Shown: positions 9,913-60,152 of the stretch, piece after piece
Position numbering within the stretch: position 1 is the first letter of the stretch
How the letters are laid out: each line of letters starts with the position of its first letter
Source: Anolis carolinensis
Taxonomy: Eukaryota
Direction of reading: 5' to 3'
NCBI RefSeq assembly: GCF_035594765.1
Contig: NC_085842.1
Location: 45,856,782-45,920,781 of the forward strand
Length of the DNA stretch: 64,000 nucleotides
Program-made: the position numbers and the translations under genes
The notes under the pieces: generated by a model
What the model saw: only the letters and a program-made list of their open reading frames with translations
What the model was told of the DNA's origin: nothing
Databases searched by the model: none

Positions 9913-10913
9913 CTGGAAAACAAGAAAGAAACTTATGATTACACTCTGGGACAAAGACAGCATAAAATCCAACAAATAAAATAAACTCAGAACCATGTTT
10001 TTTTTTTATTCATTCTATCCACCTGTAATGTGGCCTTCCTCTTTTTCTATTCCCTTTTATCTTACTAAACATCCATATCTTTTCTAATGAGTCATGTCTT
10101 CTCATGATATATCCAAAGGATGACAGTTTACTGGCTTCTAGGGAGAGTTCAGACTTGGATTCTTTTATTTGTGAGAGGTTTTTTTGGCAATCCATAATAT
10201 CCATAGAACTCTCTTCTGGCACTACATTTCAAACAAGTTGATTTGCTTCCTGACAAATTTCTTCACAGTCCAGCTTTCACAACCATACGCAGAAATAAGA
10301 AATATGTTGCCAAGGACAATCTTGACTTTGGTGTTCAGCTTTACACTTGAAGATCTTGTCTAGTTCCTTCAAAGATGCCATTCCAAGTCAGAGATCGCAT
10401 GAACAGTGGTTCTCAACTTGTGGGTCCCCAGGTGTTTTGGCCTTCAACTCCCAGAAATCCTAACAGCTGGTAAACTGGCTGAGATTTCTGGAAGTTGTAG
10501 GCCAAAACATCGGGGGACCACTGTTGTAGAGTTAATGTAAGTTGACACCACTTTAACTGCTATGGCTCAATGCTATGGGATTGTAGTTTTTCAAGGTTTT
10601 TAGCCTTCTCTGTCAATGAGTACTAGTATCTCAGATGACTACAAATCCCAGGATTCCATAGCATTGAGCCACGGCAGTTAATGTTGGGGCAAAGTACATT
10701 AATTCTACAGTGTTGATGTAACCATGACATTCCACACTTAGCCATGTCTCCCAAAATTCCATAAAATTGAATCATGCCAACTAAAATGGTATCAAATAGA
10801 TATAACTGTGCAGCATAAATACATTGTGAATGATAGTCTGCAGCAGGTAGCAAGTGGCTTGTAAACATTCTCAGGGTCTAGGAACCCTACAACTCATGAG
10901 CCTGATGATGATA

Positions 10914-10958
<45 letters not shown>

Positions 10959-12535: not shown

Positions 12536-12588
<53 letters not shown>

Positions 12589-21500: not shown

Positions 21501-24500
21501 AGTCCTGGATGACAGACATTTTGTCATTAACTGATCTGGCATTTAATAGCAGAACCTTCAGCCCAGGGGGTTTGTCATGAAGGCTACTATGACCAACTTC
21601 CACCAGGGTCGCCAGGACTTTGTTGCACTTCTCCCTGGGATGATGGTGGCTGCCATTCCCCTCCCCCACACAACCTCCCCCCAGCTCTAACCCTTCCCAC
21701 CCAGGGAGACAGGCAGGTCAGGACTAATATTTGGGGTTACTAGTCAGCTCTCCAGTAGAGGGGAGCCTCATAGGATCTTATCCTGAGTGGCGAATGAGGA
21801 TGTTTCTTGTGACAGTGAAATGAGGGAGTCATCTGGAGTACGAGGGGGACTAAACAGGGGCAGTGTCTGTGGATGGGATTGGAGGGTGGAGTGGGCAGGG
21901 AATAGTGTAGCTAAGGGGGTCTTTAAGTGGGCTCCTGAGCATGGAGAGGCCCTATATGGAGAGTCACAAGCACTGAAGTTACTGGATCATATTAAGTCCA
22001 AACCAGCAATAAGGGGGCGAATCAGTGGGTCTGTGAAAACCCTCCTGCTATTAATGCCTCAAAACTTTAGCCAGGATCTATATCCAAATAACTCTTTCGT
22101 TAGCTATTTGTCTTCCAGTGTGGTGAGGAGATATATAGAGTAGTCTCAAGATTGATAATCTCTGCAAAGCCAATTGATGGACTCAGATTTGACCTCTATT
22201 GGACTCCTAGATAGTATTTGTGCCAGATAATTCTGGACCACTCTCCTTGAGGTCCATCTATCCCTATTCAATAATGAGTCTGAAACTTCAAATGTTAGCT
22301 TGTTTGGTTGTAGAGGATGTTGATCTTGATGTATTATACTCTGAAACTGAATATCAGACTCAGGTGTTGTGTTAATAGTTGTCCTATGTAAACTAAAATT
22401 CTTTTCCCAAGGACCAGCCCTCCCTTGTCCCCTTTGATCCCGAAAGAATCTTCCCTCTCTCTCACAGTCCTCAGTTTCTATTGTTTCATTCACCTTATGT
22501 TCCTCATGGTCTCCCCTCCTTCCCCATCCATTTCCAGTGTCCAAATGTCCTCAGTTAGGTTGATAAACACAGTGTCCTATTTCTTGAAGATGTTGTATTG
22601 TATAGGGTTTTTCACTATCAGGAAGAGTCCATGGAAAGGATGGTCAATTTTCTCATTCAGTGTCTCAAGTTGTTGAAGAACGAGATTAAATGGCTTCCCC
22701 ATAAGTTCACACAAATGAGACAGTTAATTTCTTCTATGAGTTTCCAGCTGATTATTATCCTAACAACTTCCCAGAACCTTCGTATAATACTACTCACATC
22801 CTCACACCCACACTTTCTTCCTAATTACCTTTTTCTCCCCTTATCTTCCTAAACACTCTCATCCAATTCTTATCCACAAACCTTCAACCTACTTTCTAAA
22901 CATCAATCTTACTTATTCTGACCATCTATCACATTCCAAAACCTAATCAAGAAATGCAATCTCATTCCCGTCCCAAAAATCCTATGCCCTTTCTACCTCT
23001 GAATAATCAGAGTAAATTTTTAAATAGGCTTTTTCGTCCTCACCTCCAGATTTTCTGTGAACAGCAATAATAATCCAAAATTATCTAACCCTTTGCTCTC
23101 CTTCTAAACAAACACTAAACCAAAAATAATGCTAACTCAGTCGAGTAATGGTGGAATATAATTAAAATAATTAAATGGATAAAATAGGCAAGATGGTGGC
23201 AAACAGAAGAACAGAGGGCGAAACGGGGGAAACAGTGAATATGAAACCATTATTTTTTCTATTCTGAGAGGACAGTTCTTTAGGATTCTCTAAGTTCTTC
23301 AGCATAACTCTATGGTCAACATCCAGTGAAAGCTGACCATAGAGTTGCACTAGGACCTCATCACATGGACTTTGAGAAGCATTGGAAACAGTTTGTCTAG
23401 CAAAGGGAATCATACAGTTAGATCTCCAGTCATCTGTTTCAAGTTCTGTCTTCCCATCACACATGTTTCCGACTGTTTTTCCCACATTCAGAAATATCAC
23501 ACGGAGAATCCTTTTCCCTGCCCTCCCCGTATTACTTTTTTAAAAAAAACAGGGAAAGCTTCAATTTCCAAAAGCCAAGATTACTATGGACCTCATCCCA
23601 ATGGGGCTGGGGCAGGTGAGGGAAGTGAGAGAATTTTGAAACCCTTTACCATGATAAGTCTTCCCCATTCTTTCCTTCCCTCCATTATACCTGTGTAATT
23701 ATAAAACCCTTTGCCCTGATCACCTCTTGCAAGGCTTTGCTTCCCCTCATTATACTAGTGTAATTTTGAACCTTTTTGCCTTGATAAGTCTTTCCCATGC
23801 CTTCCTTCCTCTTCATTATATCAGTGTTAATATAAATCGATTGCCCCATCCCCTCTTGCAAGCCTTTGCTTCCCTTTATTACAGCAGTGTAATTATAGAC
23901 CACTTTGCCGTGATCCCCTCCTGCTAGGCTTTCCTTCCTTCCATTAGACCAGTGTTATGTTTAAAAGCTAGCAAGAGCACAATTTCGAGCCTAGATTACT
24001 ATTGAGGAGAAAATGCAGTGAAAGCAAAAGCGATGAGGGGCACCCATTCCTCCATGTCACTGAAATACTTCAACATGGGTGAATCTGTCAGATCCCATTA
24101 CTTGTTCTGATGTGCACCAGAGGCTCAGAACACAATTTCTCACCCTTGTTCTGAACTCTTTTCTTTCAGCATGCTTCAGGTCTATTGCAAGGATGAAAGG
24201 CAATGGATGACAGCCAGAAGTAGACAAATGTCATCTGATGGGCTCCATGTCACTTCATCCTTGAAATGGACCTAAAGTGTCCTACAATGGAGAAAATGCT
24301 TCATGTAATGAGGTCCCTAGAGAAGAGATGCCTAGAAAGGCTGTATTAATCAAATCCATGAATAATCAAATCTGCAAAAGGTAAAACTGCTAATGTAGAG
24401 GGCTAACTGTAAGTAGATCCAGACTTAGTCATACTTACTAATGACACATTGAAATCCATAACTAATAGAAACACCTGTGATCAGGATGGACCTGATCTAA

Positions 24501-25788
24501 GCACCTACATTTGCATATACTTGGTGGCTATTGCTAGCTTCCATGTTAGAGGGACAGTGAATACTCTGGGGTTCAGCTTGAACTTTAAAGGAGCCACCTC
24601 CTTTATGGTCCTAAATGGTAGCTTCGAGATGGAAGTTTGGACTAAAACCCAGGGTAAATTCACTGCCCCAGTGCTGCAGCAGCTGTCACTATACAAACTG
24701 ATGATAATATTCCAGATTGCCGTATGAAAATGTTAGAAGGTCAACTGGGAGATTTCCAGTTAGGTGCTATACAGAACTTTACCTCTATATGGTATCTAGA
24801 AATCCAAGATCACTGGCTTCAAAACAATGATTAGGAATAAGTTTAGGAGTTATTTGTCATCTAATGTTGATACATTCCTGAGAGCAATTATATACCATGT
24901 TCCAGAATTAACTCAAATGAATTAATCTGTCCATGGGGTTGTTGTATGTTTTCCAGGCTGTATGGCCATGTTCTAGAAGTATTCTCTCCTGATGTTTTGC
25001 CCACATGTATGGCAGGCATCCTCAGAGGTTGCGAGGTATCTCACAACCTCTGAGGATGCCTGCCATAGATGTGGCCAAAACGTCAGGAGAGACTACTTCT
25101 GGAACATGGCCATAAAGCCCGGAAAACATACAACAACCCTGTGATCCCGGCCATGAAAGCCTTCGACAACACATTCATCTGTCCATGTCTCTTCTAACTA
25201 ATGCTGACTTTTGCCAGGGGTTCTCAAACTTTTCAGCCATAGAGCCCCTTTTGAAGCAATTTTTTTAGTGCAGCCCCAAGAAATGTTTCTATATTATATT
25301 ATATATAATATATTGTGTGTGTGTGTGTGTGTGTGTGTTAATCTTTATATATTATTGTAATTGTGAAATGTTTATATAGTGTATTATATTATATGTATTA
25401 AGGAAAAATATTTTTTAAGATTCATGGCGGCATTGGACAGAGGAGCGCAGACAGGAGTCACCACCACTGGGATCATGTAGAATCATTTAAGATTCTAAAT
25501 ATCATACCAATCCAAGATTCTTCATACTTAATCCTGATAAAAAAATAAATAGTATTTCTGCTGCTGCAACCCTTTATGTCAGAAACATTAGGCTACCTCC
25601 TGTTCTACTTACATTTTAGCTTGTGAGGAAACGATCTTATCTTCAGACTCATGAACAGATTCACCTTTCTTGATCCGACACCAAGTATTTTTGATCCGCA
25701 CCAGTTGGAAATCTGTCTGCTTGGAAATCTTGGGCATGGTTGCAATAGAAGAGGAATCAGCTAAAAGGATCTCTTTGGATGCTGGCAT
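9824..25788 (-). CDS. eevs: 2-epi-5-epi-valiolone synthase (sedoheptulose-7-phosphate cyclase, DHQS-like superfamily; gadusol pathway); complement(join(9824..9912,12149..12401,14594..14827,15667..16300,25613..25788)), 1386 nt = 461 aa plus stop
   Basis: Five GT-AG exons with compatible phases (2,0,0,1) and no stops; motifs IAIGGG.CLDIVG, RRRTPYIRVPTTLL..VDA.VG.KN, KNKLG, GL.EILK, MLEELAPNLWE, DFGH and HGEAV. Confidence 0.96.
10008..10390 (-). mobile_element. Decayed RTE/BovB-like LINE 3' fragment
   Basis: FGYIMRRHDSLEK...G.RKRGRP..RW motif typical of RTE ORF C-termini; boundaries approximate. Confidence 0.7.
10903..10980. repeat. (GAT)n microsatellite
   Basis: Direct reading; produces the spurious poly-Met ORF. 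Confidence 0.95.
12149..12401 (-). CDS. eevs: EEVS exon 4 (RALPSLMHGEAVNVDM...MPLPTGLGTA)
   Basis: Acceptor aatttcAG; donor G|GTACGT; HGEAV metal-ligand motif. Confidence 0.95.
12536..12595. repeat. (TAA)n/(CAA)n microsatellite, probably the tail of a minus-strand L2-type fragment
   Basis: Direct reading; followed by tttatt...cccgcc...atctcc 3'-end motif. Confidence 0.8.
14594..14827 (-). CDS. eevs: EEVS exon 3 (MALMKH...MLEELAPNLWEDDLNRLVDFGHLISPELEM)
   Basis: Acceptor ccatttaAG; donor ATG|GTAAGT; 78 codons. Confidence 0.96.
15252..15645. mobile_element. Tc1/mariner-pogo-type MITE (termini TACCGTATATACTCGAGTATAAGCC-like)
   Basis: Inverted termini; a fresher copy starts at 63952. Confidence 0.8.
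15667..16300 (-). CDS. eevs: EEVS exon 2 (NAD-binding domain)
   Basis: Acceptor ccctaacAG; donor AAG|GTATAA; contains ORF 15661..16233. Confidence 0.95.
18612..18905. mobile_element. Nested palindromic MITEs (ctacactgcc...attatctgctttgaactggattat family)
   Basis: Internal inverted repeats; same family at 49545-50180 and 53550-53780; boundaries approximate. Confidence 0.7.
19735..21700 (-). mobile_element. Degenerate L2-clade LINE ORF2 (AP endonuclease plus RT), frameshifted, in EEVS intron 1
   Basis: LLNARSV, CITETWL, VVLGDFN, GPTH..GHTL.L, NYRPIANLPFLGKVLE, QSGFRPGY.TE.AL and LLDIS..FDTIDH across ORF fragments. Confidence 0.92.
23640..23960. repeat. Degenerate tandem repeat (about 65-70 bp unit)
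   Basis: Recurrent cttccctccattata..agtgtaattata and ccc.tt.cc.tgat motifs. Confidence 0.65.
24936..25172. mobile_element. Penelope-like element remnant (inverted terminal duplication) with decayed hammerhead motifs
   Basis: About 100-bp arms forming a hairpin; 3' end gccttcgacaacaca; flanking 15-bp duplication att(a/c)atctgtccatg at 24921-24935 and 25173-25187. Confidence 0.8.
25613..25788 (-). CDS. eevs: EEVS exon 1 (MPASKEILLADSSSIATMPKISKQTDFQLVRIKNTWCRIKKG...QAK)
   Basis: ATG at 25788 with an in-frame stop upstream; second in-frame ATG with strong Kozak context (accATG) at 25737; donor AT|GTAAGT in phase 2 matches exon 2; FQLV.IK.TW motif resembles the vertebrate EEVS N-terminus as recalled. 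Confidence 0.85.
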
Positions 25789-28667: not shown

Positions 28668-30676
28668 GTAAGTTTCCCCTCTGCTAGTTTCCCCATAGAT
28701 TCCAGAGAAGGGAAACCTCTTGTTGCATAGGTCCCCATCTCTCATACAGCAAGGCACCAACAACTAGCTTGCATAAAACAAACACACACACACATGAGTG
28801 CTGCCACAAGGCACTGCTGTCATAAGTCCTTATACTCCTTACCCGCAGCACAAAAGAAAGTCCTGCGGGCATCATGCAGCTGGTGTTGAAAGCCAGCCAA
28901 GTTATTCTATAAGAGGGCCCTTGGGCTCCGATTGATACGCTTCATGTGCTGACAGGAGTGGCCCTGCCCCACACATGGAGAACGAAGCACATTCCCTAGT
29001 TGTGGACTTCTGGTCTCACGCAAGTAACACGCAGCAAGAATAGCTTCACTTTGAAGCCTGGGGGAATGCTATCACAATGCCACACTATACAGGTAAACAT
29101 CCCCTCTCTCCGACTCTTCCATTGTTTTCAAAGAGAATGATTAAGAATGGTCCTCTTTAACTGCTTTCTTCTTTAGAATTCTCTTTATTCATATGTGGGG
29201 TTTTTTCTGGCATGAATTTTAAAAGTTTAATTAAAAAGTAAACCAACAGCACTTTGGACAAGTTTGTTCTGGATCGTAAAAGGATCACCTAGATCTGATC
29301 AACTAATAGATTTGATTTTGATTTATACTGGTCAGTTTTTATTAAGTATGTTCTAGAAAGTGAAAAATGAAAACAATACAACCTTGTGGGTCAGGAATTT
29401 TGGATATGACATTTGTTTAATGGTTGAATTATAAATCCTATGGTAAAGGAAATGATACTTGTTCAGGCCTTGGTGGTGGGGTTATGTGTTTGTGAAATGT
29501 TCATTGTTTTCGTGTTTTGTTTCACCGTAAGTTGTTAATGTATTTAAATAAAAAATAATTATAACAAAAAAGAATCACCTTATCACTTAAAATATATATT
29601 GCTTAGCAAACATAACTTATTTAAATATCTCAACAAAATGTTTCTGTTGCTCAGTGGAAAAATGAGTAGTTGAGAATTGATTGTTTTAAAGTGGATGATA
29701 GATGTTAAGTGTTACCTTTATAATAACAAATCAGTTATTATAATCCGTCTCTTTTAGAAAATAGCTGGACTTACTACTATATATAAAAACATCATTTGCA
29801 AAGTATACAGGACGCCTTCTACAGTATGTGAAGAAAATAATGGAAGACCTTTTGAGACATTTCAGGAATATAAACTCTGCTATCCTGAATAGGAAGCTTG
29901 AACAACCAGTATTTCCCCCCCCCCTCTCCCCCAACCTCAGCCCAAATGTAAACACCCTTTAACAGCTACTAATAGTTACTGTGGTTATTTGAAGCCTTAG
30001 TAAATACATTTATATTATATAATAAATGCTATAATGATAATTTTATCAAAGTTAAAATTTTAATCTTAAATTACAATTTTATATAAGGGGTTCAAATTGT
30101 TGTCCCTGTGCTGCACTGCTTGTCTTGTGGAAATACAGAGTTTCAAACTTTGCTTAAAGTTTCTCTTGTAATTTTGAAACACTCTCCACTATTATTATCT
30201 TTAATTGTGTTAATGTTGCATACATTTTTTGAAAAATGCAATTTTTTTCAAAAATCATAAGTTGTTTAGGATGTATTTTAATTTAGAATACCGCCACTTC
30301 TCTTCTTTGTCTGTAGTTAGAATATCCCATCATTAACATTCTGGATACATCTCAACTTTATTTTAAGTAAATGAAGAAAGCAAAAATCAAAACATTGTGT
30401 AAATCTTTTGTGAGGAGTTAATCACTAAATTTTCAATGAATGTCCTGTGTTTTAATATCTGTTCTGTGTTTTAATTATTATGTAACCAGCCTCAAGTCAC
30501 GAGGAGAGGCGGGTAAGAAATAAAATCATTATTATTTTAATATGTATTTTATAGAAATACGTTTTAATATTATCTTTTATAAAAATACATTTTAATATGT
30601 ATGTTTATAGAATTCTTACAATATTTGTGTGTTTTGACTGTGCTGTGACCCGAGTGAAAGGCGGGTAGGAAACAAA

Positions 30677-36949: not shown

Positions 36950-37460
36950 CTAAGTTGCACCAATAGGAATATGGTGTCTAGATTGAGGGAAATATTAGTA
37001 CTCCTCTATTCTGTTTTGGTCATACCTGGAATACTGTGTCTCATTCTGGACACCACCATTCAAGGATATTGACAAATTGGAATGTGTCCAGAGAAGGGTA
37101 AGAAAAATGGTAAAAGGTTCGGAGGCCAAGTCCTATGAGGAATGGCTTAGGAAGCTGGGTATTAGGCTGGAGAAGAGAAGATTAAGAGGGGACCTGATAG
37201 CCATGTTCAAACATTTGAAAAGATGTCACATTAAGAAGGGTGCATGCTTGTTTTCTGCTGCTCTAGAGATGTTGACATGAATCAATGGATTTAAATTGCA
37301 GGAAAAAAGATTTCACTTAAACGTTAATAAGAATATTCTGATTATAAGATCTGCTCAGTACTGGAATATGCTGACTTGGAGTTGCTTTCTCTGGAGATTT
37401 TAAAGCAGAGGCTGGATGGACTAGATCACCCTTGTGGTGTCTTCCACTTCTATGATTCTA
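36950..37460 (+). mobile_element. Decayed CR1 LINE 3' fragment
   Basis: [31 protein letters not shown]; ttctatgattcta tail. Confidence 0.85.
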
Positions 37461-38157
37461 AGACTGGCATAAATACAAGCAGAGGCTTCCCTACAATATT
37501 ATTTTAGTCTCCTTTCTGCAGGAAGCTTTTGTTAGGAAAGTTAAAATCGAAGATGGTTGCTGTCTCATGAGCTTTTGTATTCTGGATAAGACAGCTGGAA
37601 ACTTAAGAGAGTAGGTTCTGCTATTTGTAACTTAAAGAGAGATTTGATCAAGATAAGAGAGAAGTAGTTAGAGAGGCAGAAGAAAACAAATTTTACTAAG
37701 AATTGTACAAGAATGAGGATTGTGTAATTTAAAAAGTGTATAAATCCCTTTTGAGACAGAAGATGAATCAGTAACAGATAATATGGACCCCAGCTTTTGG
37801 GCACAATGTTCAAATGGATTCATGGGGAAAATATGGATTTAAAAGATATAAAATTTGCTCTGGGTAATAATTTTAAGAGGAAATATGTATACCTGGTATT
37901 TTACTCTAAATAGGATATCAAAAATGTCCAGGGATGTTTCAGATGTCAAGAGAAGGAGGATTATTTTTTGATGGATTTGCAGGAAAGTAAAAATGTTAAC
38001 TTAAAAAAAACCTAAAAGTAGACTTTGCAGTGTTGCCAGAGTTGTTTTTGTTTGGTATTATGGATAAAGATTTAGATAGCAAATATGGATAACTTCTTAA
38101 ATTCATGACAACAGCAGCAAGAATAGCCTTTGCTCCAACATGAAAATAGACTAAAAC

Positions 38158-38862
38158 ATAGAATCATAGAATCGTAGAGTTGGGAGAGACCTCACGGGCC
38201 ATCCAGTCCAACCCCCTGCAAGAAGCAGGAAAATCTCATTCAAAGCACCTCCGACAGATGGCCATCCAGCCTCTGCTTAAAAGCCTCCAAAGAAGGAGCC
38301 TCCACCACACTCTTCGGCAGAGAGTTCCACTGCCGAACAGCTCTCACAGTGAGGAAGTTTTTCCTGATGTTCAGGTGGAATCTCCTTTCCTGTAGTTTGA
38401 AGCCATTGTTCCGCGTCCTAGTCTGCAGGGCAGCAGAAAACAAGCTTGCTCCCTCCTCCCTATGACTTCCCCTCACATATTTGTACATGGCTATCATGTC
38501 TCCTCTCAGCCTTCTCTTCTGCAGGCTAAACATGCCCAGTTTTTTAAGCCGCTCCTCATAGGGCTTGTTCTCCAGACCTTTGATCATTTTAGTTGCCATC
38601 CTCTGGATGCTTTCCAGCTTGTCAACATCTCCCTTCAACTGCGGTGCCCAGAATTGGACGCAGTATTCCAGGTGTGGTCTGACCAAGGCAGAATAGAGAG
38701 GTAGGATGACTTCCCTGGATCTAGATGCTATACCCCTATTTATGCAGGCCAAAATTCCATTGGCTTCTTTCGCCACCACATTACAATGTAGGCTCATGTT
38801 TAACTTGTTGTCCACGAGGACTCCAAGATCTTTTTCACACATATTGCTTTCGAGCCAGGCGA
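38158..38862 (-). mobile_element. Young 5'-truncated CR1 LINE (ORF2 C-terminus)
   Basis: EKDLGVLVD, LYSALVRPHLEYCVQFWAP, LQKRRLRGDMI; (ATTCTATG)n tail. Confidence 0.95.
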
Positions 38863-39437
38863 CATCAACAATAAAATAATAAATTGGTAAAAGTACCATA
38901 TTTGCCCAAATTGTTTTGTAAAGTCTTTTGATATGCAGGTTCATGTGTGTTCTTTTTAATTATATTTACCCTTTTCTTGAAAATTAGCAAATGACCAAAG
39001 AGCTGGATATTTCATACTCCTCTGAATGCGAAACTATTCATACCTTGTTGAGGAAATATATTTTTTGTTGAATTTTCAGGTTGGACGGGATGGCTCTTGT
39101 GATTTCTTCCAACTATGTAATTCTAGGACGATTTTCTAGTCCAACCACTGACAGTGTAGCTGTCTAAAGCACCCCTCAAATGTGGCTTCCAAAACAATGT
39201 TTAAAAACCTCCAGTGAAGACAGTCCAGTCATCTTTTGGAGTAGTCCATTCCACTATAAACCAGCTTTTCATTCTGCCTTTTATTTTTCAACAAATGAGT
39301 TATCTATTGGGTCCACCCAAGTTATTCCATCTTCTTCCCCATCTCCTTCTTTTTCCTCCTTCATCTCAGCTGAGAAATTCTGTGAAATGGAGATGTCTCA
39401 CATATTTTCATTTAAACACTTTGATTTGTTGTTTTAG

Positions 39438-39597: not shown

Positions 39598-42500
39598 GTT
39601 AACACAACATTTATTTTTTACCTAAGTATGACAGGAAAATATTCAAATTGTGGGTGAACTCAAAATGACAACAATTTCAAACTGTTTCATTCACACTGAA
39701 ATGGGTTGTTTGGAGTCACTGAATGAATTGGGGATTATTACAAATAAATATGCTTGATTATTTTTGAAATAATGAATAATAATGAAGCTGCTGCAAGCAA
39801 GGTCCCCTCTCCTCTGACATTCCTTCTGTTGATTGGGTAGAGCAGACTAATTTTTCCACTCAACTCCCACAAACAATATTTGGCTCAAGAAGGCATTTCA
39901 ACAGGAGTTCTGCTTCTGACTCTCACAGTAGATATTGCTTGCAGGAGAGGGTTGAAACATCAGTTTGTTACGTTCTGATTGACAGGAGAATAGACCCATA
40001 TCATACCAGCAAATCAGGATGAGGGGGTTTGGTCTTGGCCACAGCTTCTTAAACCCAATGTGTGGTTTTGTAACTTTATCTGGGGGTTGCACTATATGGC
40101 AGTGTAGATCCAACCAAAGTATACTTAAAGTCTAAGTAGGCTTAGACTATAGCTATGGTATCAACTTCATTATTTTAGTTAGTCTCTAAGGAACTAGAAG
40201 TTCACCTTGTTTTAATATTCTGGCTATAACTTTGAATTCTACTCCAATCAAATTATTTCTGTGCCCCTGGTGAGCAGGCCACTGAAGGACAATGCATTCA
40301 GCCCCCTCTCTCCACTGAGCCAAGGTACAAAAAGCTATTATTATCAGACCCCAGATCCTGCTACGCCATCATAGCTAGTAGATGTCCCATATAGGATTTT
40401 GGCTTTAATGAGAAAGGCACGACTAATCAGTAAACACATAATACATAGTACATAAAACATATATGCCATAGTTGTGGTTTTGATCCAGTAAAGCAAATCC
40501 TTTATGCACAGCAGACCAAAACTTTTGTCTCCAAATAGCTTACTTTACGATCATTAATTAATCTGCTAACTAAATTATGCTACAGTAACTAAACTAATTA
40601 ATTAAGCTAATTTTAGGTATCATTAATTCAACTGTCTTGCTGGTACTCTCATTATTCCTTTCATAGCTACAGCAAGTCGAACACCTAAGCTTGCAAAATA
40701 GTTCCCATTTATCAGCACCTGTTCTGCGACGGGGAAGGAAAGTTGATTCTTTTCTTTGGAATTAACAATGTGTAAACTGTTCCAGTCTGTGGGTGATGGG
40801 AAAACTGAGTGTTAGTTTTGATGCTGAAATAATAGCTGAGAGTTGTTTGATTTGCACTAGTCAGGCGATAATCGCTACACATTATCTTATTAAAGTTATT
40901 GAAGCACGGGTGAGGGGTAGCAAAGAGGTTACCCTAAATGTCCTAATCTCCCAGTCTTGGAATTACTGAGTGTATCTGTTATGGGTTATGAATTCTTTCT
41001 CATATCATGGAAGATGATGTGGGGAACAGAGCCGAACCAGATGATGTGGATTTCAAACTGGCCTGGAGGCCTGCGTGCCCAAACCTTCTGGGGTTCATTT
41101 TGTTCAGTTAGGAAGATCTCACTTCTTTTGAAGGTTGAGGGAAGGAAATATTTGGTTATTCAAAATCTTGCAACTGACATGGTGAGGTTGCCCTGAAAAT
41201 CAGCTACACCAAGTGACATTGCCTATCCACCACTTTAACACACAAAAAACATGTGACAGCCATGCTGCCTACTAGATAGCTCTAAACTAGTCCACTCTCC
41301 AAAATGGGCAATGATCTTTTCACAACACAATCCCATATTTCCACCAATTCAAACAAAGAAGTCTGGCAGGGCAAGTAGAGAGGCTCAAGATTTCTATTTG
41401 GAAACCAATGGTCTTTTCACACTGCACAATTATAGTGTTAGGAATCCTCTTTAACTGCCATGGCAACATCCTATGGAATCCTGAAATCTGTGGTTTAGAA
41501 AAGAATACTGAGACTTCTTAGCCATCGAGTTTTAATGCCTCACCAAACTACAACTTCAAGGATTTCAAAGAGGAGAACCATGACATTTAAAATGATTTCA
41601 TGTGAAAAGACCCCAATCAGCCTTCGACAACACACAGACCCCAATCGATTTCTATTCTAAATATGAATGTGAATTTATCCTGAGAAACAAAGCCACTTTA
41701 GGTGCTTCCAGATATCCCCAAAATGTGAGATTTAGAAGAGGGGCAAAAAAACCTGGGACCTCAGAGCAGGTCTCCACACTGACCTGCCAGTCCTGTTATT
41801 TCTGAAGTGTGTGTCATCTAAGACTGCCTGGAGTTGGAAATCAATTACCTTCTCAATCACCTTGCCCCCAAAAGGAAGGTTAGACACTGGTCTTTAATGA
41901 TTAAGGTCCAGGGGATCTAGGGAGGGCTATTTCAGCTGAGGTCTAACAATTACTGCTTGTTTTAAACAGGATGGAAATTTCCCCTTCCTGACAGATGCTT
42001 TCATAATTTGTTGTATTTGAGATCAAATTGCACCTCCTCCAGAAAGCAAGTTGTCCTCCTTACTAGCCCCAGTAGCTTTTGAAAGTAACAAGATTCAGTC
42101 TGATTCATCACACCTATAAAGAACTTCATTCTTACTAAATTTTTAACTAACTCCATAATGCTAAGTTTTGCTTAAAGGCAATCTTCATCTTCAATTATTA
42201 CTCCTGATATCTGGAAATCAGAGCTACAAGACTTTTGAGTATTGGTGTTCCATTTGGATCTCACGGCCAGAGGCGGTTCAACTACCTGGCCAACTAGGCA
42301 GTTGCCTGTGGCACCATCTTGTTGGGGACACCATCGAGGCAACTCCTGTCTCCTGCGGCCTGCCTCCGCTGCCGCGCCTCCCTCCACAAGGAAGGAGCTG
42401 AGGTTGGCGCTTTGGGGAGCAGGAAGGCATTCGGGGCTTTGCAGAGCAGAGAAGCTGCCAAATGCCTTCCTGGCGAGGCCTCACCAGGAAAGCCTCACCA

Positions 42501-45500
42501 GGAAGGCGTTTGTTGGTTTGGGGAGCAGAGAAGCACCGCTTCTCTGCTCCCCAAAGCCCCGAACGCCTTCCTGGCGAGAACGAATGTCTAGATTTCTCCT
42601 GTTTTCAGAGTGTTGTTCTTTATTTATTGTCCTGATTTTAGAGTTTTTTAATACCGGGGGTTATCTAAGTCCACACTGCCCTATATCCCTGTTCAATATT
42701 TGGTGCTAAATTCGCAAATATAGTAATTCCTACATAACATTACCATGTATTGAATTGTTTTTTCTGTTGATTTGTTGTAAAACATGATGTTTTGGTGCTT
42801 AATTTGTAAAATCTTGATGTAATTTGATGTTTAACAGGCTTTTCCTTAATCCCTCCTTATTATCCAACATTTTTGCTTATCCAATGCTTTTATTTTTCAG
42901 TGATTGGTTTTTTTTGGGGGGGGGTGCCAAAATTCTGTTCGCCTACACTTGAAAAATACCTAGGGCCGGCTGTGCTCATGGCAAATCAATAACACTCATT
43001 TCCCTGATGGATGGAGGAGTCTGGGAACTATGGTCCCAAAAAGTAAACCTTTCAAGCTCTGCTCTACATAAAACCCAACCAAGCTATTGGGGTTCATAAC
43101 TCACAAACAAATTTTCAGGCGATGAATTATATATGCTTATCATGTGCTATGTTTTTATATATAAACTTTTCATGAGGACAAGTGTCACTTGTGAGTGAGT
43201 ACCAGGACAAGAGGGATGTTTACAATGAGTTGGTTTTCATCATTTTCTCCTTTTCATCAGGACAACATCCTCTGTGGATTGCCATCAAAATGACCTATTT
43301 TGTGAAACTAAAATCAAGACTAAGGAAGAACAACCCTCATGTGATGCAGAAGGTGAACACTTTGGATTATAAAACAATAGAATGTTACTCATATTAGTTA
43401 ACACAGAGTTGAATGATCCAGTACCTATGAGTTCTGGATCAAAAGCTCTAGTTACAGAAGACACCTTTACTTCATTTTGGGGGGTAATCAACTTTTCTCA
43501 CCCACACTACATGTCATCCCATTCAGCAGGGTCCTCCAGTCCTTTATGGGGTATTTTCAGGGGTTGAAAGATCTCCTGAAAGAGTATAAGATGGAGCAGA
43601 CCACTTCTGACATCCTTAAATTTGGACTTTGCATCCATATAAAACCCAAGTCTCTTAAAGCAGCAATGTTGGCAGATCCCATCTACAAAGTATGTTTGGA
43701 ATTTGTCTCTCTGAGTAGATCCATGAAAGAGAGAGGTATGCTCTGGCAGATGAGACGTTCAAACATATATACTTTTTGTTGTTGTTGACTCCTGTTAAGT
43801 CTACTTCAACTTATGATGATCCAGCGGATGAAAGACCTTGGGGTTACCTTGTTTTCAACACCCCTGCTCAGTTTGTTCCTCTATAAAGATACTCCAGCAA
43901 ATATCTAGAATTGTATCTCCCAGGTATTGCCATATTTTGAGCAATATATTGTCAAAACAACATTGAGAGTGCATTGCAAAGCATTCATTGTTCAAAGAAC
44001 ACCAGCAATTATAAATTTCTTAAATTGGGTTGTTTTTGAGGAATAATTGGTTCTTCTCTTGACTATGCACAAAGACCTGTGCAACAAAGTAAATGTTTCC
44101 TTGATATATATCATGTGGCTGTATATAAAGTTTTCTCTTAATGACAGATGGCAGAGAGTGTACCATGGTAGGAAATTAGTACTCCCTTCTGTCTACAGAA
44201 CTGGACCCCTACCTACCGAGACACATAAATAGGCATTTTGATAGTTTTCTGTTTGGCTTGGAGATTGTTTGTTCTTGAGATAATGTGTCTTCCAGAGAAG
44301 AACAAATCTCTTCTCTCTTTTGATTTCTAAAAGTGCATGAGCTTTTATACAGAAGGAACTGGGCCAACAATTCATTGCTCAAAATATCAGTTGTCCTTCT
44401 CTAACATTGGTCATGATTATCTCTACTAAATCTCACAAGATTTGGACAATTGGCACATAGATACAAGGAACGACATTTGCATAAACATCCTGAAGCACAG
44501 CCAACAATTTATTTAGCCTCTGGGTTCTTTCCTCATGATGCTGATGTATTTGTAGGCTGGCCATGTGCATGGTTTGACTTTTAAAAATGTATGTCTGGCT
44601 TGTAATAGCAGCTCCTCTTTCAGTTTGGGCCTTGTCCCCTTCCACACCACTTTCCTCAGAATTACTTTGGGAGCATCTACACCAGTGCTTCTTAACCTGC
44701 GGTCCCCAGATGTTTTTGGCCTACAACTCCCAGAAATCCCAGCCAGTTTACCAGCTGTTAGGATTTCTGGGAGTTGAAGGCCAAAAACATCTGGGGACCC
44801 CAGGCTGAAAACCACTGATCTAGACTGTAGTATTAATGCAATTTGTCACCACTTTAACTGCCATGGCTCAATGTTATGGACTCCTAGTTTGGTGAGGCCC
44901 CAGATCACTTTTGTAGAGAAGGCTAAAGATCTACAGCTCCCATGATCACATAGCCTTGAGCTATGGCACTTAAAGTGGTGTCAAACTACAATAATTCTAC
45001 AATTTAGATGGTCCCCTTGTGATTAGGGGCACTCCTTTTTGTGGAATTGCTCCAGTTGATTCATAACAACGCTTTCCAGCATTGCAGGGGCAATTCTCAT
45101 GAAGGAGGAAGACTCTCTTCTCCACAACTTATTTTCCACAGGAGAAAAGCAAGCAAAGCAATATCAGAGAAAAGCAGGACTACAGAACTTTCTATTTTCT
45201 CATACAATGTAGAAAAAAAATTAAATTAGGAAAGGTGAATAAATTCAGCTAAATACTGTGGAGCTATGGCAGTGTAGTACTATACTTTATTGTAAGCTAT
45301 CAACCACATTATGACTAATGTTGTACTTCAGTTCCCATCCTCCTCCACTATTGGCTTGCTGTCTTTGCTTGCGGGGGGATATAGTCCAGCAGCATGTGTG
45401 GAGTTATCTAACCCTTGCAAAGATTTGAAGGGTTTGCTTTTTTTTGTTTCCCTTTGTGTCTAGGCCAACTTTATAGAATGCTGGTGCAGATGATGAGAGC

Positions 45501-48500
45501 CAGAAGAATTTTAGTAATAGGCATGTTCAACTTTCCATGCCTTCTGGCTATGGTTGATGTGGTTCCAGATGATGGGAAGATAACTCTATGTGCCCCACAG
45601 TCATATTTGGGAGAAGCCACCCAGAAAGCACCTGATTTCTTATCTCATAGGAAGAAAATAAGGGAGAAAAATGGACCTATAACAGACTCTCTTAAGGTAT
45701 CATTTTGATGTTTATATTGGACATCTGTAGCATAATAATTAATTAACAACTAAACCACATCTTATATCTGAGGATATCAGGCCAGTTGTATAATAAAATC
45801 TGTTTAGAACAATTTAAAAGAATGGCAATAATTTTAAGACTAAACATGTATGAAATATGTTTAGCACTTATCATAATTAAAAACTGGTTAAAATAATTTT
45901 GATTTGAAGGACACCAGTGTTGATTTGAAGGCCTTTGGGGGGGGGGGGAACAGTATTCCATAACTGGGGAAAACAACAATTGCAAGTCAGTTGTAATTTG
46001 ACATGTATTTTATTAGAAGCCCTTTCACACTATACAGTTATAGCACTAAGATTCCACTTTAACTGCCATGGCACGTTTTTAAGGTTGATTTTGGACTAAC
46101 ATTTGTAGACTTATACATAAGTATACAAGGTAATTGCTCAAGATCTGGGAAGTTCAGTTTTGGACTCCAACTTCCCAAAGCCCTCAGCCAACACACAATG
46201 ACTGGGGCATTCTGGGCATTGCCCAAGTTCTGTGGTTGCTAATATGATATGGGCTCGATGTAGCTTAATTTCTATTCATGGTAGAGTTTTAAGTTTGGCT
46301 TTCATTGAAATGATAACTAGCTATTTAACCCTTTTTTCTGTCATGATGATGTTGTCAGGGAATAGAAAATATCCATATCAGAGAATAATTTTGGCAACTA
46401 TGTCAATTGCCGGGGGGGGGGGGGGGGAGGGAAAGAAAGCATATTACAGATCACCCGCAATGTGTAATGATGGAAATCTTTGACTCCCCACAGAGAGTGT
46501 GAAATTAATTGAACTGCTGTTGCTCTCTAGTGCTCATTTTGTGTAACTGAATAAAAATTACTTGAGGCAAGCAAAGTACATATGGTGTGAAGATTAAGGA
46601 AGGAAACAGGAGGACAGCCAAGCATGTAAGTGAAACCTTTAAAGGAGACTGCATCATCATCACCATCATCATAATTATGTTTTGCCCAGACATGAGAAAA
46701 GGTTAAGTGATCCAAATAGTCAAAAGGAATCTGAAAGAAGAACTTCTTCAGATATGCTCAGTATTTCAAAATGGGTTTAACCAATATCCAATATGCTCTG
46801 CAGCATGGACATCGTAGGAAGTGTATTGCTTTTTCTGTTTTAACCCCACAAATCCAAAATGTGAAGAGACTTCTAAAATACATGGCAAATAAGAGATATA
46901 AGGCAACTCTGGAATAGCAAGAAGCAAATAAATACAGTTATGAATCTTGTTGCTAGTCCCAGTCAAAGTAGACTCATTGAGTCCGCTGTTGATTAGTCAG
47001 TAAAAAAAAATAGGTCAATGGATCTACTCTATTTGTAACTAACAATAGGATTCAAATTATGTATGTCTGTCCATGTATCTGTCTGATATTAATATAAATA
47101 TATTTTCCAGGATATTTAGAAAGAAGGCAGTGGCAACAGCATCATTTAACCTACTCAGAACTTAAGGTGCATTTACACTGTAGAGTTACTACATTTTGAT
47201 AGAACTTTAAATGCCATAACTCAATGCTATGGAACCCTGAGGGCGCTTCCAGACATGACTTAAATTCACACTGAAATGGGGTTAAAAACCCCACGTCGGA
47301 ATGGATTTAAAGCCCCACAAGCCATCCAAAACCTGGGTTTTCCTGGGGCAGGTGGCTACATGTCATTCCGATTACAGTCACCTTGAAGCCCCCAAAAGAA
47401 CCCCCAATTTCCTTCATGGTGCAAGGAAATGATGCCCCAGGAGATAGGGGCAGACTCCTTGGCACCCCCGTCCCATGGCATGTCATTTCCTTGTGCCAGG
47501 AGGATGTGAGGAGGACCATAATGGTGGCTGGGTATGTTTTAAAAACTTTTTAGAGGTTCTTTTGGGATTTCGTGGGAGGGAGTGGGTGCTCTTTCAGTTT
47601 TTTTAGCTCCTGGAAACCAAGATGGCTGTGTAGATTGGGCCTGGGTACCATGTGGCACGGTCCCCGAGACCAATCCACACTGGGCCCACACCCGATAAGA
47701 CCAAAGTTCTGGATCTTACCAGGTGTTTAATTAATTTGGAACAAAGCAGAACCCTGCTTTGTTCTGAATTAATTTGGTTTTACCAAGGTGTCATTTGGAC
47801 ACCTCCAATAAAACCCAGACTGGTCTCACTTTTAAGGCCTGTCTGGATTAGGAAAGCACCAGCTGTCTTTGGCAGAGAAGGCTAAAGCCCTTGTAAAACT
47901 ACAACTCTCCATGATTCCATAGCAATGAACCAAGCACTTTAAAGGGGTGTCAAACTGTAGTAATTCTACAGTGTAGATGCCTCTTCATTGCATAGGTAGG
48001 CATGAATAATTTTCTACTGCATTCCTTGAAAATATTGGGAAATTCTGCCAAGCTTTTTCTTATCTTTGCTTTCTATCTGTCCACTAAGAAACTGCACAAA
48101 GGAAAATGTGTCCCATTCTAAAGTAAGTTCCTTCTGTAACTTACCCTCTTCTTAGGCAGAGTGTAGTTTAACAAGAGGATAGAAAGTAATCTTTTAAAGA
48201 CTGTTGTTGCATGTCCTCAACTAACTTTTGACTTCTGGTGACCCTAAACCAAACCTATCACCGGGTTTACTTAACAGGGATTGTTTAAAAGTGGCTTGCC
48301 CTTGCTTTCCTCTGAACCGAGAGAGTGTGATCACTCATTGGGTTTTCATGGATGAAATGGGAGTCAAATTCTGGTCTCCAAAGTTATAGGGCATTTACAG
48401 ACAACTCCAAAATCCTAGTTTTATAGCTGAGATTAAACAATCCCGAGACCTGACAGAAGATCCACACACAGTCCTGTAAGTCCTAGGAAATGCTTCCCCA

Positions 48501-51500
48501 CCATCCTCACATCTTTTTAAGGAGATCAAAATGGGGGGGCAGATGAGGGACATCTGGAGGAAGGTGTTTTTTTTTTAATCACTTGGTTATGTGCTGTATC
48601 TCATATACACACAACTGAATATCTTAAAGAAAGACAAGCAGATTTGCTTGTGCGCATATGAGATCCTGTGCATAACAAAGTGACATCTTTTTTTCCATCG
48701 GGTTTCTATCTTCACCCAATTGTTAATTCAAACTCTCTTTAATATTACAAAGTTGAAAATAAATATTTTCAGAAAGTTCTAATTGCTTCCCACTTGTGCT
48801 TGCCTTGAGCCACCTGTGTGTCCGTGGCTCCATGTTTAACAGCCTGATCAGCTGATCAGCTGTCTCGGGCTTTTAAAAAGTGCATGTGCACTGGCAGTCC
48901 ACACAGGGGGAAAGGAAGTAAAGCAAATGTTTTGTATGGCTGCAGGGACATACACTCATGCAATGGTGTGCATTTTTCAGGCCAAATCAGGTTTTAAGCA
49001 CACCTTTTAAACTTGTGTTTTTCAGTTGTTAACCCAATTCCACTCGCACTTTGGCTAAATGTTGTTTAGCCCCCCCCCCCCCCCCGTTTACTTTTAACCT
49101 GGTTACTTCTGGGTTTTTAGCCATGTGTAGAAGGGCCCGTGGTCTAAAACTCAAACCATTATATCACACTGCCTCTCAAAAATAACATGAGTGAAAACAG
49201 CACCATTCTCTTTTTAAATGAATATTGAAAGAAGCTTTTTATTTACAGTTAGTGATCTTTAAAGGAAGTTTTTAGAAACATTTGGGGTGGCTTCTTAAAA
49301 AAAGTCTACCATTATCATCACTGATGGGATTTTTAAAAAAGTAATGAAAAACAAATAGCTAGTTTTAACATGTTCCTGAAAATAAACAACCACCCTTTAG
49401 AAAGCAATGTATGAACTCCTGACAATGAAGTCCTTTAAAGTCAAAACTAAATCCTGCTTTGATTCATTGCCCCATGCTGATTCTTTAGGCCCTGATCTGT
49501 TCCACTGTGAGTTTAGATTTCATCTGAACTCAGTATCTCTCAGGCTGGAGCTACACTGCCCTATATCCCAGAATAAGATCCCAGGTTATCTGCTTTGAAC
49601 TGGATTATATGCGTCTACACTACCATGTATTCTGTGTCAGGGTATTGTGTATTGTGAAATGTTAAAATCAATCTGGGTTATTAGAAATGCCTTATGTGTT
49701 AGTTTTTCGGCAAGGCATTTCAGCAGTTATGGAGTTAATGAGAGTCTGCTATGATTGACGTATCACAGGACCAATGGGGTCAAGTTTGTTTTGACCGGGA
49801 CTTTCTTTCTTGTTCCTGTGGAATGCAGAGGAGTGTCTTCAGGAGAGCAGTCTGGAAGAGCAGTAGAGCAGTGTCTGTGTGTGCATGAGTCGTTTCGGCA
49901 AGAGCACTCATGGAGAGAAGGACTGATTTGCTCTGTTTGTATATAGTCATGTAAATAAAGATATATTGCCATTGGATTTCCAACCGAACCCTCGTCTGCT
50001 GGAGTGTGTTTGTCCAGTGCTGTTTTTCCACACCGGGAGACAGTCTGGAGAAGGAGGTGAAGACTGGGATGGTGAATTTTTGGATTTCACTCTGCTACCC
50101 ATCATCCCCTGACATTCTGGAATAAGCAGATAATCTGGGATCAGATCCTGAGATATAAGGACAGTTTAGAAAGGGCCTCTGTGTGTATTTAGAAAGCTCA
50201 TGGCAGTGGGTTCAATTGCACCATTTGGAGTGCAATTGAGGCCCCTTCACACAGCTGTGTAAAATCCACATTGAACATTCTGGGTCATATGGCTGTGTGG
50301 AAGGGTCCTCCGTGATGTCTTGGGGGTACATGGGGCCTGCTCCTCCTCTTCTTCTTACGTGCTGCATGTTTATTTCCTCCTGAAATCTCCCTTATTTTTT
50401 TCAAGTGATACAGCAACATGTAACAACAGAAAAGAAGGAGGAGCCAGATTCCAGTAGGGAAGGGAAGTGGTACAGTGTGTGGGATCACAGCAAGGGGCTG
50501 AAACAGCAATGCCTCATTAACTCCCCTCTCCAAGATATCCATGACTTTTCATTAATTTAGGTATATCTGTACTTAGTTGCTTGCTTAATCCAATCACCAT
50601 CCACATTTGCTGTTTTGACAAATTTGACATTACCCTACCCTAGCCGACTTTCTCCTGCTTTCTAGGACAGAAATGACACTTGGCTCAGGTTGTTTAGCCC
50701 ATAGAGGTAGGAATGTAGACTGAGTTAAAGCCCCCCAAACCTTGTGCCAGTCTGTTTCTTATCTAGGTGGGCTCAGAAAAAGTGATTATCTGGTAGCTTG
50801 GTGCTAACCCCCTGCAGATTTGAAAGAAACATATCCCCTTTGTTCCCTCATCTTGACAGGGAAGCCCATGGACAACTGGGAAGAGAGAGCAGAGTGGAGA
50901 TTGCTTCTTTCAGAGTCTCCCAACACAGACTAAGCACCTACCAGGCACTGGGAGGTTACTCCATGCTGGAAGACCCCCAAAGATGTACACAGCAGCTCCA
51001 GCTTTGGGTGACAGTAGTGATCACTGTCCTTAGCCTTGAAACTGGGGCTGTTTTTCTGAATGGGCATACAACAGCTCTAGCTATGGAAGGTGGTCAGTGG
51101 TCAAAATCTGCCTCTTTCCTGAAGCTGGGCTGCTATGTGAATGTGCATATGGTCCCAGACTTTGAAAGGGGATCAGCACAAGGGACTGGCAACTAGGCAT
51201 ACATTCTTTCTGCTCATTTTCATCCAGAGAGTCCCTCAGCTGCCCAATTGGCAAGCCTGGGGTGCACTCAGGAGTCTTGCCCCTGCCTGCACTGTATTCA
51301 CATTCCCCCCCCCCACTTTTGTGAGGATCATGCAACCCTATCCTCTGCAAATGTGGAGGTCCAACTATATATTGCAAGATAAAGATACCTCATCTAGAAT
51401 TGCAAAAGCCAAAATACCCCCAAATCTGAAATCGTCCCCATGGGTGGTTGAGATAGTGATGGCTTTACAATTTGATGGTTCAATATACATGAGCTTTTTA

Positions 51501-54500
51501 TGCACAAAATTACTAACATTAATTTATATAAAATTACCTTTAGGCTATGTGTATGAAGTGCACAAGAAACAAAACTGAATTTCATGTTTAGACTTGGGTT
51601 CCATCTCCAAAGTAACTCAGTATGTATGTATATGCAAATATAGTTATTACGAAATCTGAAAAAACAACAAAAACAAACAAAATCCAAAACACGTTTGGTC
51701 CCAAGCATGTTTGATTTGGACAACAACAAAAATGTTATTTAGATATACTTCTTATTGAACCTTGCCTCTAACATTTTGAAATGTCCTTGTTTATAAAAGT
51801 CTTTGTCCTTGCAATAAAGAGACAGAGTTTTAGGAGAGGCAGGTTTTCATAGACTCACATGGAAGCACCTTTAAGTCAAAGCCACAGATTTCCTATTAGG
51901 ATACTTTGGAAGAGGTTGAAGGAAGAAGGATCTTTACCAAAGACTACAGAGTGAAGGATACTGCAATCCCACAGGTCACAGCTGGCTCCACAAGAGGGAA
52001 TTCAGGTACAAAACGCAAAAAAACAGCAGATGGTTGTACCCACAGGCTGGACTTACTCCCACATGTTCTCCCATCCCTCTACAGATGCTGCTCTGAACAG
52101 CTGCCAAACTAAATTATCCCACAGTAGCCTTCTGTTGTATAGCCTTTGTTTGCTTGTTGATATGCTGGAACCTGAACAGAACATATGCACAGGCCCTCAG
52201 TTAATTGTGTCTCTTTTCTAAGACCTGCTGTTCAGGTAATCTGAATTTCAGTTATAGCTGGAATCATGGTATGCTGTTTGTTGAGTTTTATTTGCCTGGG
52301 TCTTAAATATACACTTTATGTTTTTAAATTGAAACACAAAAGAAAAGTGGTTTAAATTAGAAGGGACATTAATGGTCCCTTCTAATCGTCTATACCAATG
52401 GTTCTCAACCTTCCTAATGCCGCGATCCCTTAATACAGTTCCTCATGTTGTGGTGACCGCCAACCATAAAATTATTTTCATTGCTACATCATAACTGTTA
52501 TTTTGCTACTGTTATGAATTGTAATTCCACAGTTTGAAGACTTGGATGTTCCAACATGCTTTTGAACAGTAGGTTTGTTTTTATCACCATCCAGTCTTAA
52601 CTATTTACTGCCCTAACCCTCAGCACTTTACCCTATTCCTGAATCTCATTGCCTTGCGTTTTTGCACATGCCTGCCTTCCCTGTAATTTCTTAGTAGCCC
52701 CACTGTTTAGTCCTGATGCTTGCTGATGTATCTTATGAATGTTATTTTACTGTTTTTGTTTTAATTTATATGCTGTCATCATATTGTTTTATCTATTGAT
52801 TGGGCTTGGTCCCCATGTGAACCGCTCTGAGTCCCCTTGGGGAGATGGAAGCGGGTTATAAATAAAGTTTTTTATTATTAGTAATGTAAATATCTGATGT
52901 GCAGGATGTATTTTCATTCACTGGACCAAATACATGATATGGCCAAATTTGAATACTGGTGGGGTTGGGTGGTGGTGGTGGTGATTTTGTCATTTGGGAC
53001 TTGTAGTTGCTGGGGTTTATAGTTCACCTACAATCAAAGAGCATTCTGAACTCCACCAATGATGGAATTGAACCAAACTTGGTATACAGAACTCCCATGA
53101 GCAAAAAGAAATACTAGAAGAGTTTGGTGGGCATTGACCTTGAGTTTGGGAGTTGTAGATCACCCAGGAAGCTCTGGTGTGGGCTGGTCCATGAGGTCAC
53201 GAAGAGTCGGAAATGACTGAACAAATAAACAACAACACAAGTTCACCCATAAAGCACTGTGGACTCAAACAATGATGGATCTGGACCAAACTTGGTACAA
53301 ATACTCAATCTGCCCAAATTGGTGGGGTTTGGGGAAAAATAGACCTTGACATTTGGGAGTTGTATTTGATGGGATTTATAGTTCACTTACACTCAAAGAG
53401 CCCTTTGAACCCCACCAATGATTAAATTTGGGCAAAACTTCCCACACAGAACCCCTATGACCAACAGAAAATACTAGTCTTTGGCGACCTCTCTGAACAC
53501 CCCCCTGCAACACCCCCAGGGGTCCTGATCCCCAGGTTGAGAAACGCTGGTCTACACTGTCCTTATATCCCAGGATTTGATCCCAGATTTTCTTCTTATC
53601 CCACATTATATGGAGACACATATAATCCAGTTCAAAGCAGATAACTTGGGGCCCTTCCACACAGCCCTATATCCCAGAAGATCAAGGCAGAAAATCCCAC
53701 AATATTGGCTTTGAACTGGGTTATCTGAGTTCACACTCAAACAATGTGGGATTTTCTGCCTTGATCTTCTGGGATATAGGGCTGTGTGGAGGGGCCCTGG
53801 GATTAACTCGGAAGTCCCTGAACAGACTCAGAAGCAGAGTGGGCAGATCAAAAGACAACCTAGAAAAATGGCACTACCTACAAGAATCCTCCATCTTGTG
53901 TGACTGTGGAACAGAACAAACAACTCTGCATCTGTATGCTTGCCCACAATGCCCTGCCTCATGCACAGAGGAAGAATTGTTTACAGCTACAGACAATGTG
54001 GTCTCTGTTGCCCATTTTTGGTCAAAAACTATTTAACTGCTGTGTTCCCTCTATTTTTAACAATTTTATACTTATTTATGCAGTGCTTTTGATGCAAAAT
54101 AATAATAACCGGGGATGCGATCCTGGGATATAAGGACAGTGTAGAAGAGGCCTGAGATGATGAGAACAATAACAATAATACTTAGCATTTCCGGTGTCCT
54201 TTCTTAGGCTTGATACATCCCATTGTAACAATATGACATGGACAGACTATGGTATTAGAATGGCATACCCCACCATAGTTGCACTGTATTGATTTATTTT
54301 AGCTTTGGAATTTTCAGGTTTATTATTTAGATTGTGCTGAAGTTTCAGATCCCACCATTTGAAAGCCTTAACAAGATCATACTGGGAAGTAATAACACCA
54401 TATTTGCAAAAGATTCCGGTAATTGCAGCACACTGTGGAAGCATGTTAGGGACTTTGGCTGCCTTTTTCATCCCCTCCTCTCGTTTATTCGACAGGCTAG

Positions 54501-60152: not shown

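Follow-up and report, generated by a model that had tools for sequence, protein, structure and literature searches.

The window, that is the whole 64,000-nucleotide stretch of Anolis carolinensis DNA analysed here, contains the gadusol gene pair of vertebrates, with EEVS on the minus strand (9824-25788) and a divergent MT-Ox gene on the plus strand, running from 29077. The same pairing of EEVS and MT-Ox is found in loci L001-L004 and L006-L009, and in sturgeon MITF lies adjacent to it. The exons of the two genes and an N stretch are located as follows.

9824-9912, minus strand: last EEVS exon, with the stop codon (per-exon homology, splice check)
12149-12401, minus strand: EEVS exon 4 (per-exon homology, splice check)
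14594-14827, minus strand: EEVS exon 3 (per-exon homology, splice check)
15667-16300, minus strand: EEVS exon 2 (best PDB match ValA, 4P53, E=1.9e-43)
25613-25788, minus strand: first coding exon of EEVS, divergent from MT-Ox
29077-29092, plus strand: MT-Ox start exon (ATG, 16 nt), matching the N-terminus of the annotated A. carolinensis protein P0250
39438-39597, plus strand: MT-Ox exon encoding N-terminal helices (160 nt)
43261-43352, plus strand: MT-Ox linker exon (92 nt), shorter and diverged in tetrapods
45464-45696, plus strand: MT-Ox exon with SAM motif I and beta2 (233 nt; Pfam PF01596, E=4.7e-7)
54533-54784, no strand: N stretch, intronic (between 45696 and 55902), within a conserved non-coding element
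55902-56138, plus strand: MT-Ox exon with DADQ and VRN (237 nt; Pfam PF01596, E=1.4e-9), under strong synonymous constraint in sauropsids
60075-60152, plus strand: MT-Ox exon closing the MT domain, with QGG inside (78 nt); the SDR exons lie past the window end

EEVS is a sugar-phosphate cyclase with ValA as its nearest relative. Its five coding exons (1386 nt) form an open frame with canonical splice sites and are each 64-89% identical to their fish, frog and bird counterparts, which bears out the original prediction that the partner gene is pristine. In animal EEVS proteins the 14 active-site fingerprint residues are reported to match (Osborn et al. 2015, PMC4426668). The five MT-Ox exons between 39438 and 60152 total exactly 800 nt, and a check of the sum, the phases and the AG/GT sites confirmed that they are free of stops and bordered by canonical splice sites. 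Translated, the MT-Ox exons of the window give the first 272 residues of P0250 (UniRef R4GB59, LOC100554218), in which a PF01596 domain, the part matched by these exons, is fused to a C-terminal SDR. Sequence searches were run exon by exon, the full-length protein being the database record, and it was on this record that the SDR was examined, its exons being outside the window. Exon 55902-56138 was present in 18 sequencing runs from 6 studies, most of them guessed to be RNA; the splicing predicted for anole MT-Ox rests on conservation and annotation. Among the database models, the RefSeq anole protein P0252 carries an unsupported insert of 52 residues, and turtle models P0001 and P0120 wrongly take part of an intronic conserved element (40778-40865 in the window) as an exon.

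Repeats were also recognised. Positions 3-1849 hold, on the minus strand, open frames resembling gag and protease that belong to an element of the LTR retrotransposon type, positions 19668-21717 hold broken minus-strand frames like LINE endonuclease and reverse transcriptase, and CR1-like pieces occur at 36981-37277 and 38157-38959. The intron after the last MT exon contains a tandem array (60794-62361) made up of 10 copies of a 156-bp unit, 98% identical.

An intact MT exon that had escaped notice, or a second copy of the MT part, was looked for in the window and in eight related loci and none was found, nor did the relatives' loci contain either at the position of the N stretch. The MT-Ox exons on its two sides meet in phase 0 and directly follow one another in every homologue, and the distance between its flanks is approximately 251-252 bp in A. 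sagrei, Lacerta and pigeon, with a similar spacing in turkey and turtles; given these exon-free relatives, the N stretch hides no exon. It falls within the last of the intronic non-coding elements at 40515-41164, 43877-44025, 46441-46643 and 54320-54898, which show 70-90% identity among anole, Lacerta, birds and turtles and are candidate regulatory elements of the MITF-FOXP1 interval.

In PF01596 enzymes, the Glu of motif I and an acidic residue at the end of beta2 serve SAM binding, an Asp-Asp-Asn set binds the metal and a Lys-Asn-Asp triad is responsible for catalysis (PMC6153501, PMC11407090, bioRxiv 2023.01.28.526015). In an alignment with alfalfa CCoAOMT (1SUI), the residues of the fish MT-Ox MT domain pair one to one at D163/D165/K166, D189/N190 and D238. 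Five motif changes had been described for the anole domain, and each of them reads as it had been given.

45511-45537, plus strand: degenerate SAM motif I, LVIGMFNFP (fish LEIGMFTGY), the motif acid and a glycine being absent
45589-45597, plus strand: CAP at the end of beta2 (fish CEL), the SAM-ribose-binding acid lost
55944-55955, plus strand: DADQ, the first metal Asp kept and the catalytic Lys changed to Gln
56025-56033, plus strand: VRN, a metal Asp changed to Arg (Glu in most sauropsids) and the Asn kept
60090-60098, plus strand: QGG, the triad Asp lost

The catalytic triad of the anole protein reads Gln-Asn-Gly instead of Lys-Asn-Asp, and among the metal ligands Asp, Asp and Asn the first Asp and the Asn remain, the second Asp being Arg. 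Compared with cation-dependent class I OMTs (CCoAOMT 1SUI/5KVA, SafC, SynOMT 3CBG, COMTD1 2AVD), the domain has in common the fold, the PF01596 family, the first Asp of DADK and the Asn of VDN, but is without the motif I Glu, the beta2-end acid, one metal Asp and the triad's Lys and Asp. With both SAM acids and the other catalytic and metal positions gone, the MT half of MT-Ox is very probably dead as a catalyst, as the original prediction had proposed.

The fold itself appears to have been kept. In the AlphaFold model of P0250 the MT region, mostly with pLDDT values of 70-90, has the class I Rossmann-type methyltransferase fold, and Foldseek returned 3TR6, 3R3H, 2AVD and 3CBG (E ~1e-12), with an rmsd of about 2.5 A to cation-dependent OMTs; the SDR half of this model was of low confidence and was left out. 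The PF01596 score drops from 175-184 bits in fish to 95 in the anole and 48-68 in frogs, all above the cut-off. A retained fold and family score are what would be expected if the tetrapod domain still methylated through a non-canonical active site and gadusol were made as in fish, and variant triads do exist in active bacterial enzymes: bacterial COMTs with the Lys mutated show anything from no activity to a slight reduction, and the triad of DesAOMT, an active enzyme, is R-N-K. We nevertheless regard continued methylation as very improbable, since at least five essential positions, both SAM-anchoring acids among them, have been lost together, the replacements are clade-specific, motif I is unrecognisable in frogs and the Pfam scores have fallen so far.

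The distribution of these losses was followed in 208 MT-Ox proteins from three homologue searches (71 ray-finned fish, 86 bird, 10 turtle, 11 squamate, 1 tuatara, 1 alligator and 28 frog), a database sample biased to intact models and with salamanders, caecilians and lungfish absent from the matches. Used as a query, exon 55902-56138 brought up proteins of turtles, birds and alligator in which the DADQ-type change recurs. In Channa numbering, E117, T122, E143, K195, D220 and D263 are kept in all 71 ray-finned fish. E117 is kept by none of the tetrapods having a residue there. K195 is replaced by Gln in 84 of 85 birds, 10 of 10 turtles, 11 of 11 squamates, the tuatara and the alligator, with Glu taking its place in 27 of 28 frogs. 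At 220 the Asp is retained in one bird only; Glu is the residue in most sauropsids, with Arg in Anolis and Sceloporus and Lys in Phrynosoma, and most frogs have Gln. D263 is kept in one turtle only, and E143 in no sauropsid, where Ala, Ser, Thr or Gly is found instead; the frog alignments are noisy near both of these positions. At position 122, in the SAM loop, the Thr has given way to a fixed Lys in turtles, tuatara and nearly all birds. The residue following the lost beta2 acid is a Glu in birds, and in several frogs an Asp immediately precedes the lost triad Asp.

The inactive domain had been presented as a trait of this lizard. The alignment over fish, frogs, turtles, birds and squamates that had been suggested as a check instead places the main losses in all sauropsids and, with other end residues, in frogs, which rules out lizard-specific decay. 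Only two changes are late, the squamate-restricted loss of the second motif I Gly and the appearance of Arg at the metal site, so that this Arg offers weak ground for the altered ligand binding once read into it. The picture is quite different in the SDR half. The glycines of TGxxxGxG, the NAD-selecting Asp after beta2 and the Asn-Ser-Tyr-Lys set (the original prediction had asked for the glycine motif and YxxxK to be inspected) are present in P0250 and near-invariant over the 208 proteins, the exceptions being gaps and a few aberrant models. The 186 SDR positions invariant in fish are kept at 176-180 in each tetrapod group; the figures for the 103 fish-invariant MT positions are 33 in frogs, 49 in squamates, 62 in birds and 65 in turtles.

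Since bacterial and plant relatives carry the fish residues, the change lies on the tetrapod side, and the relaxation of the domain would have started on that side of the fish-tetrapod split. When branch lengths were fitted to a fixed species tree, those of the MT part exceeded those of the SDR 1.9-fold within teleosts and 7.4-fold on the branch between fish and tetrapods; for the stems of frogs, sauropsids and squamates the factors were 7.8, 3.6 and 5.8. These values favour a relaxation that began before the frog/amniote split and was followed by separate decay. A single origin of the loss is only likely, because frogs and sauropsids differ in their end residues and salamanders, caecilians and lungfish are absent from the matches.

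Selection was analysed in ten MT-Ox loci. Among six sauropsids the SDR had an omega of 0.093 and the MT core one of 0.38, and overall the MT domain lies at about 0.3-0.45; exon 45464-45696, less touched by synonymous constraint, gave 0.32, and the omega of exon 55902-56138 is inflated through a low synonymous rate. Pairwise MT values were 0.20 for two anoles (CI 0.09-0.43), 0.24 for pigeon-turkey, 0.23 for two frogs and 0.50 for anole-Lacerta. That MT-Ox simply became a pseudogene early on in the lineage of the anole might be read into the higher MT omega of squamates (about 0.5) and the death of the gene in snakes and gecko, but stops, frameshifts and broken splice sites are absent, the SDR is intact and under strong purifying selection, the value for the two anoles is far from 1 and birds and turtles have the same losses; this explanation is largely refuted and is given next to no weight. 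Because the SDR omega is 0.09, the SDR motifs are kept and the MT omega is below 1, MT-Ox is, to judge from the coding sequences, not a pseudogene, and its MT domain remains under a constraint that is weakest in squamates and frogs. The prediction of an intact gene thus stood up to the per-domain dN/dS comparison. Five Logan contigs of 1.8-2.8 kb (P0303, P0356-P0359) encode full-length, tree-frog-type MT-Ox of 518-520 aa; being so short and yet full-length coding, they must be spliced transcripts of a fusion between a pseudo-methyltransferase and an SDR.

Part of the remaining constraint acts at the nucleotide level. In sauropsids 7 of 199 synonymous sites of exon 55902-56138 have changed, versus 152 of 684 in the SDR exons (Fisher p=1e-11), and between pigeon and turkey the figure is 0 of 71; the constraint is absent in fish and borderline in frogs. 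This suggests an enhancer or a splicing element overlapping the exon. An antisense coding frame was rejected, the minus strand of the anole exon being without a recognisable protein, as was a conserved RNA structure (no Rfam match; weak covariation, in 3 of 49 pairs). A second near-frozen exon, the 72-nt SDR exon at L001:49519-49590 and its orthologues, lies beyond the window; its synonymous changes in sauropsids number 0/20, 1/19 and 0/20, and the freeze is not seen in frogs or fish. The constraint on exon 55902-56138 means that part of the persistence of the MT domain is explicable without a role for the protein, and the overlapping DNA element may account for part of it, the fixed Gln and Glu included.

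This bears on whether the sauropsid MT domain gained a non-catalytic or altered function, for example the binding of metal, product or a partner, or regulation of the SDR. Gln195 is sauropsid-wide, Leu117 and Lys122 are shared by birds, turtles and tuatara, and Glu220 is found in most sauropsids. Birds and turtles further retain D192, D194, N221, the Glu at 220 and both glycines, leaving three potential metal ligands, and, measured against the SDR, their MT domain is evolving at about the slow pace seen in fish, the ratio within birds being distorted by a poor kiwi model. On these grounds a binding or residual role is possible in birds and turtles. As a general explanation a new function seems improbable, for the exon with Gln195 and Glu220 is also frozen at synonymous sites, so that fixation need not be protein-driven, and in squamates and frogs the domain is eroding much faster.

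The published route to gadusol consists of oxidation of EEV by the SDR, enolisation and then methylation (PMC4426668). The zebrafish enzyme (zgc:113054) is an orthologue of that of the anole, alike in the divergent EEVS pair, the exon structure, the MT and SDR fusion and the SDR motifs; it differs in that its SAM, metal and catalytic residues are intact, these being lost in the anole and the sampled tetrapods. The SDR half of the anole protein, with unchanged cofactor and catalytic residues, would oxidise EEV as proposed for zebrafish, and its product would then enolise. The MT half, from the residues that it has lost, would be unable to methylate, and it is at this step that conversion of EEV to gadusol with SAM and NAD+ is predicted to fail in the anole. 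The end product would be desmethyl-gadusol, an ene-diol of formula C7H10O6 with m/z 189 [M-H]-, a mass obtained by arithmetic from the m/z 203 of gadusol. The MT domain would stay folded as an obligatory N-terminal part of the fusion, with one of its exons additionally frozen by the overlapping DNA-level element. Our main reading, to which we assign a probability of roughly 0.55, is that MT-Ox has, from the tetrapod stem onward, consisted of a pseudo-methyltransferase joined to a live NAD+-type dehydrogenase and yields desmethyl-gadusol rather than gadusol; an unmethylated cyclitol is the best prediction for the tetrapod enzyme.

Two other products have to be weighed against desmethyl-gadusol. 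With the MT half dead, gadusol could still be made if a separate OMT (COMT or COMTD1) methylated the intermediate, an ene-diol, in trans. Ascorbate, itself an ene-diol, is a known substrate for O-methylation by COMT (PMC3475673), COMTD1 (2AVD) is among the closest structural matches of the MT part, and such a bypass would account for a relaxed fused domain with the end product unchanged. Acceptance of the substrate by COMT is only presumed and gadusol has never been reported outside fish, even though tetrapod copies have been called functional (Rice 2023), and we consider methylation in trans unlikely. About equally unlikely is that the SDR, no longer pulled by methylation, acts as a reductase or epimerase on EEV, or that other enzymes process its product further, giving a valiolol-type C7 cyclitol or another compound that does not absorb UV. 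SDRs are reversible, databases name MT-Ox proteins after polyol dehydrogenases, and the loss of the MT function would be explained equally; the Asp selecting NAD(H) over NADP(H) is kept, though, and the SDR is almost without fixed tetrapod-specific change. Joint loss with EEVS in dim-light lineages also suits a light-related product. EEVS together with MT-Ox has disappeared from snakes, gecko, crocodylians and mammals (bioRxiv 127654), a joint loss that still links the enzyme of tetrapods to the EEVS product.

A comparable arrangement exists in animal fatty acid synthase, which has a structural psi-MT region, a dead methyltransferase fold fused to active enzymes. There too the dead fold stands before an active oxidoreductase, a likeness of description; unlike the psi-MT region, MT-Ox has an active ancestral form surviving in the fish orthologues. 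Desmethyl-4-deoxygadusol, the DDGS product of the MAA pathway, is likewise an unmethylated cyclohexenone precursor, methylated by a separate OMT. It differs in being made directly by DDGS and in having no 4-hydroxyl, the route envisaged for the anole being EEVS plus SDR.

Amphibians, reptiles and birds were counted as having the pathway by Osborn et al. (PMC4426668), who assayed only the zebrafish enzyme, to which the demonstration of gadusol production is confined. A 2026 preprint repeats that gadusol has been detected in fish only and treats its role in tetrapods as an open question. Little searching of tetrapods may be the cause of this; loss of the MT function in tetrapods is another possible reason. 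The literature searched, with subscription journals, theses and patents outside its coverage, contained no mention of a degenerate MT domain or of desmethyl-gadusol, and searches with desmethyl-gadusol names and tetrapod locus identifiers were empty. The pathway is known; what we take to be new, and a real feature, is the apparently tetrapod-wide pseudo-methyltransferase in a live fusion enzyme, which is wider than one lizard.

Desmethyl-gadusol is chemically a reductone like ascorbate. More tentatively than for the enzyme itself, at somewhat less than even odds, the pathway, which was acquired horizontally, may have been rewired in the transition from water to land by switching off one domain, so that frogs, turtles, birds, tuatara and lizards would have made an undescribed endogenous ene-diol cyclitol, desmethyl-gadusol in place of gadusol, for some 350 million years; the same tentative reading has the ene-diol serving as an ascorbate-like antioxidant or UV absorber that was lost with EEVS in dim-light lineages. 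If true, most non-mammalian land vertebrates would make a small molecule that has gone unrecognised, and MT-Ox would be a clean case of pathway change through the inactivation of a domain. It would also be a caution, an intact reading frame having been taken as proof of an intact pathway. The puzzle of fish-only gadusol would gain a direct, sequence-based explanation that is testable through the mass of the product.
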